DNA from: Piromyces finnis finn
Lineage: Eukaryota > Fungi > Neocallimastigomycota
Assembly (NCBI GenBank): GCA_002104945.1
Contig: MCFH01000003.1
Location: 248,001-312,000, forward strand
Reading direction: 5' to 3'
DNA: 64,000 nucleotides
Shown: positions 11,901 through 14,117 of the stretch, one piece after another
How the letters are laid out: each line of letters opens with the position of its first letter
Position numbering within the stretch: the stretch's first letter is position 1
Notes under the pieces: model-generated
The model's input: only the letters and a program-made list of their open reading frames with translations
Told to the model about the DNA's origin: nothing
Databases searched by the model: none
Made by a program: the position numbers and the translations under genes

Positions 11901-12105
11901 AACTTTACGTGGTAATAAATACAATGCTGAAATCTATTGTTTCTACCTTAGAAACTCAATTGATGATGACCCATTTGAAAAATTTTTACAATCATTTGCT
12001 GATCTTGTTGTAATCTTCAATGATATTTCAAGTATGTACAATTATTTAACACCTCCAACAACAAGTTATAATAATATGTTAAATCCGAAATTATATTTAA
12101 AGTAA
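8951..12105 (+). CDS. Arrestin-C-like beta-sandwich + IFI44/IFI44L-like P-loop NTPase + vWA domain protein, 919 aa if it ends at 12105
   Basis: Exons 8951-9231, 9387-10910, 11151-12105 with two phase-2 introns, 2760 nt in frame. Walker A GTCKNGKT; LDLVLNGN, KIHVVI, IALTNTD and PISNY match the IFI44 motif order. DVILAFDAAC, IGGFLFG, TLYRTL and LWIFISE give a vWA pattern. Confidence 0.75.
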
Positions 12106-12372
12106 ATAAGAACTATCTTAATACTAATTTAACACTAAAAAAAAAAAAACTATTACTATATAAAAGTTTATATAATATATATAAATATCATTTACATTAT
12201 TTTACTAATAATATATTATATAATTTTAAAAACGTTAGGTTCCTTAAAATACTTAGAGAATCATCAAAAATGTAGGGAGTTATATAATAATTATGAATTA
12301 TTTCATTATAATAAGATATGCTCTATCATTAAATCTTAATTATGAAAATTTTTAATATATATTTATTGACAG

Positions 12373-14117
12373 AAATTTATTAAGAAATAAATTAACGGGA
12401 TATATTCCGTATAACATTGGCGATTTAACTAGTATTACATCAATGTTAGTTATTCGTAATAATTAATTTTATTATTAGGCATAAAAATAAGGGAAAATAA
12501 TTATTAATTATGAAATTATCGTTCATCATAATATATATATATATTTAGAAATTTAAATGTTAACTTGCTCTCTTCTTTTATACCAAGTACAATTGGAAAT
12601 CTTATAAATTTAACTGAGTTGTAAATATATAGAATAGTATCATTTGCTTAATCCTTTAGCCTACTAAATATTAATTATTTTATTGTTATTATTATTGTCA
12701 ATAGACAATTATCATTTAATAAGTTAATTGGTCCAATACCAAATGCTATTGGAAATCTTAGAAAATTAAAAGTTTTGTAAGTAGATAAAAAGTTAAATAT
12801 TAAATTATGGTTTTTTCTACTAAAAAGCAATGAAAATTAATAAACGTAATAATAAACATAATAATAATAAACGTAATAATAATAAACATAATAATAATAA
12901 ACGTAATAATAATAAACGTAATAATAATAAACGTAATAATAATAATAATAATAATAATAATAATAATAATAATAATAATAATAATAATAATAATAATAAT
13001 AATAATAATAATAATAATAATAATAATAATAATAATAAATAATAAAATTTCATATTTTATATTTTATATATAGAAAAATGTCAAATAATAATTTAGTTGG
13101 CCAAATTCCTTATAGTATTGGAAATTTAACAAATTTAACTAAATTGTAAGAACATATCAATATATATTTTGTTATAAAAACTATGGTGTAAGAAATTAAT
13201 TTTAATCATCATGTAGACGTTTAGAAAATAATAAATTGTCGGGACCAATTCCAGAATCTATTTCCAATTTAGTTAATCTAGAAAAACTGTATGTATTTTG
13301 ATGATATGATTGTATTAAGTTTTTTTTTTTTTATTTTTTTTTATACTTGTTATAGTATTAATATATATATATATATAAATTACTTATATAATTATATAAA
13401 CTAGAAAATTAAACAATAATTGTTTGAACGGACCTCTACCAGATTCAATTGGAAAATTAACAAGTCTAAGGGTTTTGTAAAAATTTATTCCATGCTTTAT
13501 TTTAAATTGAACTATATGTAGAATTAATATAATGTTACATTTTATTAAAATTATTTATTTTTCAAAACTTATAGAAAACTTGGTAATAATAAATTAAGAG
13601 GAACTATTCCTTATTCAATTGAAGGCCTTACCAATTTAGTAGAATTGTAATATAAAAATAATATTTTTATCCCTACTAATTGAAAAAAAGCTAACTTTTA
13701 TTTAATTATATTATATATATAGACATTTGAATGATAATTATTTCTCTGGAGGACTGCCCGAATCAATAATTAGTATAAAAAGTTTAACAACTCTGTAAGA
13801 TATCTATTTCTAATGATATTAAAATATTATAATTGATATTTATATTTATTCTTATTTTATTCATTTTTTAAAATTAAAAATATATAGTTTCTTACAAAAT
13901 AACGAAAATCTCAGTGGTGAAATATATGAACAAAATAATACAACATTATCATTAAGAAAGATGTATGTATAAATTTGAAAATATTTATAATACTTTTATA
14001 AAAAATATGAAATATTATATTAATATATATACAAATTTTTATTTATTATTATTATTTTTTTTTTAAAGAAATGTTTATGGAACAAAGATAAAAAATAATC
14101 TATATATATAAATAATG
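12373..14117 (+). CDS. Plant-type (RLK-like) leucine-rich repeat exon array with no evident own start; either the 3' part of the upstream gene or a 5'-truncated gene
   Basis: Eight exact 72-nt exons (12373-12444, 12549-12620, 12705-12776, 13074-13145, 13217-13288, 13405-13476, 13575-13646, 13723-13794), then 13888-13962 and 14069-14117. All introns are phase-2 GT-AG. Each 72-nt exon encodes xLxxNxLxGxIPxxIGNLxxLxxL. Confidence 0.85.
12836..13040. repeat. Compound (AAT)n microsatellite with AAACGT/AAACAT interruptions, intronic
   Basis: Directly visible in the intron between LRR exons 3 and 4. Confidence 0.95.

Follow-up and report, generated by a model that had tools for sequence, protein, structure and literature searches.

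Two classes of intracellular protein are described in which a P-loop NTPase and an LRR solenoid are carried on one chain, the ROCO proteins and the NTPase-LRR proteins of the NLR (STAND) type. ROCO proteins are marked by a Roc domain followed at once by a COR domain, with the LRRs placed N-terminal to Roc, and NLRs by a NACHT or NB-ARC domain and, typically if not strictly by definition, by an expanded and variable repertoire. An NTPase-LRR protein is uncommon in a fungus, since fungal NLRs have been reported without LRRs (PMC4986451). A third relevant system is found in plants, where the LRRs of receptor kinases and PGIPs are built from 24-residue repeats, with one repeat per exon.

Here we analyse a locus of the gut fungus Piromyces finnis that lies within a 64,000-nucleotide stretch of contig MCFH01000003.1 (hereafter the window; 15-34% G+C). 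Like ROCO and NLR proteins, its predicted product combines a P-loop NTPase and an LRR solenoid in a single intracellular protein, and its repeats share the consensus of the plant LRRs. Literature searches found no paper on this gut-fungus family of G-domain/LRR proteins. An initial annotation of the window proposed that the stop codon of the upstream gene doubles as a splice donor, through which the gene can be joined in frame to the LRR array.

Results

The locus reads as one 14-exon gene

We propose that plus-strand positions 8951-14112 hold one Piromyces finnis gene of 14 exons, in which the intron opening at the apparent stop codon would be an ordinary one, the product would be a GTPase-LRR protein of about 1164 aa, and the public P. 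finnis model would be three exons short. To this reading we assign a probability of roughly 90%. Its exon structure, its conservation and its splicing in related fungi can be read directly from the data described below.

Exon 1 (8951-9231) begins with the ATG at 8951 and encodes an N-terminal segment of about 93 aa. Intron 1 (9232-9386) separates it from exon 2 (9387-10910), which encodes a linker and the P-loop GTPase and ends in the donor AG/GTAGAA (the slash marks the exon boundary), a phase-2 donor that also yields an in-frame TAG. Exon 3 (11139-12101) encodes the putative alpha/beta C-terminal domain and ends with ...NPKLYL followed by the first two bases, AA, of a split codon. These three exons match residues 1-93, 95-601 and 603-922, respectively, of the public protein ORX59079.1 (P0012; UniProt A0A1Y1VKT1, 'L domain-like protein', Piromyces finnis), which is 1105 aa long.

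The end of exon 3 reads ...TTA TAT TTA AAG TAA in frame, with the GT at 12102-12103 and the stop at 12103-12105, so the overlap of the TAA with a phase-2 donor, AA/GTAAAT, that the initial annotation described is plain in the letters. The intron that would start here (12102-12238, 137 nt) opens with GTAAAT, and the TAA forms its bases 2-4. It is followed by a 33-nt micro-exon of phase 2/2 (12239-12271), encoding FLKILRESSK plus a split Ile codon between the flanks TTAG/ and /GTAGGG, and then by an intron of 101 nt (12272-12372) bounded by GTAGGG and CAG.

The LRR array begins at the phase-2 acceptor at 12373, directly after that CAG. As had been noted initially, LRR exon 1 carries no ATG (its in-frame upstream extension first meets a TAA, at 12353-12355), no signal peptide and no N-cap. 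Eight LRR exons of 72 nt each, at 12373-12444, 12549-12620, 12705-12776, 13074-13145, 13217-13288, 13405-13476, 13575-13646 and 13723-13794, are followed by a ninth of 75 nt at 13888-13962; all nine are of phase 2/2 and have AG/GT flanks, and the order of the first three is identical in orthologous genomic contigs. The last exon (14069-14112; NVYGTKIKNNLYI) ends in the stop TAA at 14110-14112. Exons were translated and searched individually, and for the joined product only their lengths were added up: it is 1153 aa when exon 3 is joined directly to LRR exon 1, 1164 aa when the micro-exon is included and 922 aa if the TAA at the donor is used; the direct-join frame is indeed open, and its length corrects the 1151 aa first given. 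Upstream of the gene, at 5899-8450, the plus strand carries ORFs of 217, 127 and 329 aa with Ser/Asn/Asp/Glu low-complexity sequence and no Pfam hit, which look like a separate gene or genes.

The overlap of stop and donor is a generic feature of the gene

All 13 introns of the gene are of phase 2, and at nine of the 13 donors (GTAA or GTAG), including that of exon 2 and those of most LRR exons, an in-frame stop directly follows the split codon. The hexamer GTAAAT itself is reused within the window, as the donor of LRR exon 2 at 12621. The overlap at 12103 is thus not beyond chance for this gene and is generic, arising wherever a phase-2 intron opens with the usual GTAA; the intron at 12102-12238 would be an ordinary phase-2 intron whose start happens to read G plus TAA in the frame of the exon.

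Comparison with related gut fungi, which had been suggested as a check on the donor, bears this out. A GT occupies the same phase-2 position in every lineage compared, and exon order is kept in the other lineages. The stop is more variable: L013/L014 and L039 also have it immediately after the final sense codon, whereas in L019/L021 (CA/GTTTAG) and L023 (CA/GTATAG) the GT is kept without a stop and the frame continues into the intron.

Transcripts of relatives splice at the homologous donor

The upstream gene is joined in frame to the LRR array in four kinds of evidence, namely the public P. finnis model, orthologous gene models, intronless cDNAs and a matched pair of cDNA and genomic contigs. 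The public annotation already contains this join: ORX59079.1 comprises exons 1-3, LRR exons 1-3 and 6-9 and the last exon, each matching the window at 100%, and connects 12101 directly to 12373.

Queried with exon 3 (321 aa), a word search returned P0004, a protein encoded by the full ORF of JGI contig L012, which is 1191 nt long and free of introns. Its sequence opens with the C-terminal 150 residues of the exon 3 domain, continues into FIKILKDSTKI and then into nine LRRs, and the cDNA is colinear with exon 3, micro-exon and LRR exons of the window. A search of representative sequences and a second word search yielded full-length homologues, among them intronless cDNA contigs of relatives (24-26% GC) with ORFs of 1163, 1172 and 1216 codons, the longest present in five samples, in which the N-terminus, GTPase, C-terminal domain, micro-exon peptide and nine LRRs stand together. 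All transcript-derived homologues are spliced at this site.

The most direct observation comes from a Neocallimastix-like fungus, for which a cDNA (L026) and a genomic contig (L039) form a pair with 99% identity. The genomic exon 3 ends ...TTA CA/GTAAAG, which reads CAG TAA in frame, and the cDNA joins this CA to a 33-nt micro-exon (100% match to the genomic contig) and then to LRR exon 1. A homologous donor with the same overlapping stop is therefore demonstrably spliced. On the same genomic contig, at L039:259-438, a 59-aa ORF with a protein-kinase (PF00069) match precedes this orthologue's exon 2 ORF by about 360 nt.

In at least four other lineages (genomic contigs L013/L014, L019-L022, L023 and L039) the order is the same, with the micro-exon 107-178 nt beyond the end of exon 3 and the LRR exons after it. 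No P. finnis cDNA was found among the word-searched ORFs of 77-562 aa and 760-2418 aa, so for P. finnis we argue from conservation that the micro-exon and LRR exons 4 and 5 are included. Four Logan contigs (L015-L018) were considered as possible evidence for intron retention and set aside as genomic or uninformative, since in them exon 3 is flanked by part of each neighbouring intron and the contigs break off at low-complexity sequence.

Exons are conserved and introns are not

Exons of the gene are 66-88% identical to orthologous DNA, and introns 39-59% with gaps. The contrast is sharp around the donor, where the intron at 12102-12238 aligns with gaps at 45-48% identity between flanking exons of 79-88%, and the next intron, 12272-12372, at 45-57%. 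The micro-exon itself is 79-88% identical without gaps, with AG/GT flanks in all five contigs L013, L014, L019, L021 and L023. LRR exons 4 and 5 are 75-86% identical and likewise AG/GT-flanked in L021 and L023, while the intron between them is only about 43% identical. Across the array the LRR exons are 66-82% identical to orthologous DNA, and only one part of the protein is better conserved than the LRR region (mean pairwise identity 73%, against 59-66% for the G and C-terminal domains); this pattern indicates that the LRR exons are under purifying selection.

The orthologues, comprising Anaeromyces and Neocallimastix gene models and metatranscriptome cDNAs, show 52-77% identity. ORX81647.1 of Anaeromyces robustus (1168 aa) and ORY10086.1 and ORY85906.1 of Neocallimastix californiae have the same architecture and score above the Pfam cut-off for LRRs, and the cDNAs L024, L025 and L027 show the same domain order with the micro-exon peptide and nine LRRs. 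Neocallimastix has two paralogues. The exon 3 C-terminal domain is a single copy in the P. finnis genome; it matches only 4 clusters in 1.84 billion representatives, all from gut fungi. A DNA search of the whole genome with the LRR array matched only the microsatellite in one of its introns, and hence revealed no parent copy, recent duplicate or close DNA paralogue. In one homologous contig (L020:42-1985) exons 1 and 2 form one continuous ORF, so that intron 1 is absent in that lineage.

The public models differ in how much of the gene they include

Relative to the window, ORX59079.1 represents the same gene without 12239-12271, 13074-13145 and 13217-13288, so that the micro-exon and two repeats, LRR exons 4 and 5, are missing from it; in the DNA all three are intact, have canonical splice sites and are conserved against L021, L023 and L012. 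We aligned nine LRR-bearing homologues (three gene models, five intronless cDNA contigs and one 2430-nt JGI ORF), and LRR exons 4 and 5 are present in all of them, leaving ORX59079.1 as the only sequence that lacks them. All nine also carry the 11-residue micro-exon peptide, with the pattern F[LIVC]KI[LM][KR][ED]S[ST]K[IV].

The initial annotation had offered the micro-exon as an optional element that keeps the frame and restores a hydrophobic LRR position. Both structural points stand: the 33-nt exon of phase 2/2 preserves the frame and is conserved in relatives, and the split codon at the LRR1 position reads Ile with the micro-exon and Lys without it. Its optional status does not, for an exon present in every relative looks constitutive. 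The absence of the micro-exon and LRR exons 4 and 5 from ORX59079.1 is most likely an omission of modelling. The intron between LRR exons 3 and 4 (297 nt) contains an AAT-rich microsatellite of about 200 nt at 12830-13040, which may have misled assembly or gene prediction. This microsatellite has the form (AATAATAAACGT)n / (AAT)n, and sequences 70-98% identical to its 12-mer repeat occur at more than 70 further sites across the genome.

The model from Piromyces sp. E2 (OUM63098.1, P0005; 1382 aa) departs from those of the relatives in another way. Its C-terminal domain is 76% identical and ends in ...NPKLYLK, as the window does before the TAA; unlike the relatives it stops at the donor-overlapping TAA before any LRR, and its N-terminus is longer than theirs by about 630 residues. 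The model is probably wrong at both ends, with an upstream gene fused to it and its 3' part cut off at the TAA. One gene would thus appear in three forms of public annotation: complete (Anaeromyces, Neocallimastix), three exons short (P. finnis) and cut at the TAA (Piromyces sp. E2).

The predicted protein combines a G domain with plant-type LRRs

The initial annotation read the protein as arrestin-NTPase-vWA-LRR, and these assignments fared unequally. Firmest are the LRRs, which form nine tandem repeats when read exon by exon, with the consensus LxxLxLxxNxLxGxIPxxIGxLxxL. Pfam LRR_1, LRR_8 and LRR_14 score above the cut-off in P0004, P0006 and P0007, and are precomputed for P0012; tandem repeats of 23-25 residues together with an above-cut-off Pfam LRR place the array in the plant-specific LRR type. 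No domain other than the LRR reaches its curated threshold.

The NTPase assignment stands at the level of motifs. A Walker A/G1 motif (GTCKNGKTS) and a G4-like motif (TNTD) are readable in exon 2, and Pfam GTPase families appear there only below cut-off (GTP_EFTU in 4/6 sequences, AIG1 in 3/6, and RsgA). ESM Atlas features link exon 2 to a chordate MMR_HSR1 cluster (0.96) and to an 'interferon-induced protein 44-like' cluster (0.94), so that an IFI44-like G domain, drawn from these features rather than from alignment, may serve as a lead. IFI44 carries an N-terminal TLDc domain, and Pfam returned no TLDc hit in exon 1, exon 2 or the full-length orthologues. Nor did Pfam detect an arrestin domain in exon 1 or in the intron-less N-terminus of L020.

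For the exon 3 domain, the ten best named ESM Atlas hits were all VWA (0.92), at a low shared-feature count of 142-148. Pfam gave no VWA hit in 8 members at E <= 10, profile searches of PDB with the exon 3 and exon 2 domains returned nothing meaningful, and when five VWA loci of this genome were combined into a VWA profile, hhalign matched the exon 3 profile to it with a probability of 0.9%. The exon-2 control was equally negative and both profiles are shallow, which makes the hhalign result weak evidence against a vWA fold. The motif FD(A/S)(A/S)C is only MIDAS-like (MIDAS being DxSxS...T...D), and AlphaFold2 pLDDT values of 36.5 for the C-terminal domain (8 sequences) and 34.5 for exon 2 (6 sequences) were too poor for a fold search. 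The domain is possibly an alpha/beta, vWA-like one.

The N-terminus is hydrophilic and the highest 19-residue Kyte-Doolittle mean is 1.2-1.5, from which the product is predicted to have neither a signal peptide nor a membrane segment. Its plant-type LRRs would accordingly sit in a cytosolic protein.

Alternative readings of the locus

The initial annotation went further and cast the TAA as a switch, regulated retention of the intron giving a 922-aa isoform without LRRs beside the LRR-bearing one. The position of the stop directly after the last sense codon, in the window as in L013/L014 and L039, is what such a switch would look like, and the Piromyces sp. E2 protein ends at exactly this point, though it is a prediction and not a transcript. 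However, the stop is lost in L019/L021 and L023, where the frame runs on into the intron, and the same overlap recurs at most donors of this gene; a stop that is not conserved and an overlap that is generic argue against a selected switch. Among the transcripts of relatives, moreover, we found none that retains the intron, stops inside it or lacks the LRRs. Transcripts that retain an intron with 11 more introns downstream are usually substrates of nonsense-mediated decay, a fate that the retained product would usually face here as well. We regard regulated retention as very improbable. Still more remote, to the point where we give it almost no weight, is the idea that the LRR array has no link to the gene before it and represents either a gene of its own or a headless pseudogene. 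It would account for the missing ATG, signal peptide and N-cap, yet in at least five lineages the array follows the same gene with order and frame unchanged, cDNAs join the two parts, the LRR exons are under purifying selection, and the genome holds no close DNA paralogue.

The least improbable competitor, though one we still consider unlikely, takes the 1105-aa public model at face value, as a true isoform in which P. finnis skips the micro-exon and LRR exons 4 and 5 as cassette exons. Cassette skipping is possible because every exon involved is of phase 2/2, and ORX59079.1 lacks exactly these three symmetric exons, with the frame preserved. Against it stand the inclusion of all three exons in every other LRR-bearing homologue and the conservation of the supposedly skipped exons with their AG/GT flanks. 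Skipping the micro-exon would also place Lys where LRR1 needs a hydrophobic residue, and the microsatellite offers a possible source of error in assembly or prediction. We thus prefer the single, ordinarily spliced gene, in which exon 3 would be spliced to the micro-exon, then to nine exons of plant-type 24-residue LRRs and a short tail, giving about 1164 aa.

Discussion

Our analysis settles a question of gene modelling and brings no new mechanism. Its practical gain is a corrected model of 1164 aa for ORX59079.1. A reading based on ORFs takes for the end of the gene a TAA with which an intron really begins, and in these AT-rich genomes most phase-2 donors of the GTAA type set the same trap.

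The corrected model describes an uncharacterised family, found in gut fungi only, that is mildly unusual for a fungus in uniting a cytosolic G domain with plant-type LRRs. We suggest that the protein would bind GTP in the cytosol and would engage a fixed partner through its conserved C-terminal LRR solenoid, and that the nucleotide state of the G domain could control the complex between LRRs and partner. A bolder proposal, which we consider rather improbable, is that this gut-fungus-only IFI44-like/vWA-like/LRR family acts as an intracellular nucleotide-switched sensor in the niche of NTPase-LRR proteins, with cassette exons tuning its binding in P. finnis. Were this true, the family would fill a niche missing in other fungi, where NLRs carry ANK, TPR or WD repeats and are not known to carry LRRs, and the symmetric cassette exons (the micro-exon, LRR4 and LRR5) would tune the binding surface of the P. 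finnis protein.

The label 'NLR/ROCO-like' sensor, applied in the initial annotation, does not hold when the defining features are examined. Neither NACHT nor NB-ARC gave a Pfam hit in exon 2 or in five orthologues, Roc appeared in 1/6 sequences at E = 0.24, and COR gave none. The LRRs of the P. finnis protein are C-terminal to the G domain, the reverse of the ROCO order. Receptor repertoires that expand and evolve fast differ likewise from the P. finnis gene, with its single-copy C-terminal domain and conserved LRRs. The likeness to plant receptor kinases and PGIPs is closer at the level of the repeats, which share the consensus and the layout of one 72-nt exon per repeat, and differs in that the P. 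finnis protein has no signal peptide, N-cap or membrane anchor and ends with its repeats. On the reading proposed here, the protein would stand nearer to G-domain/LRR proteins of the scaffold type than to an immune receptor under diversification.
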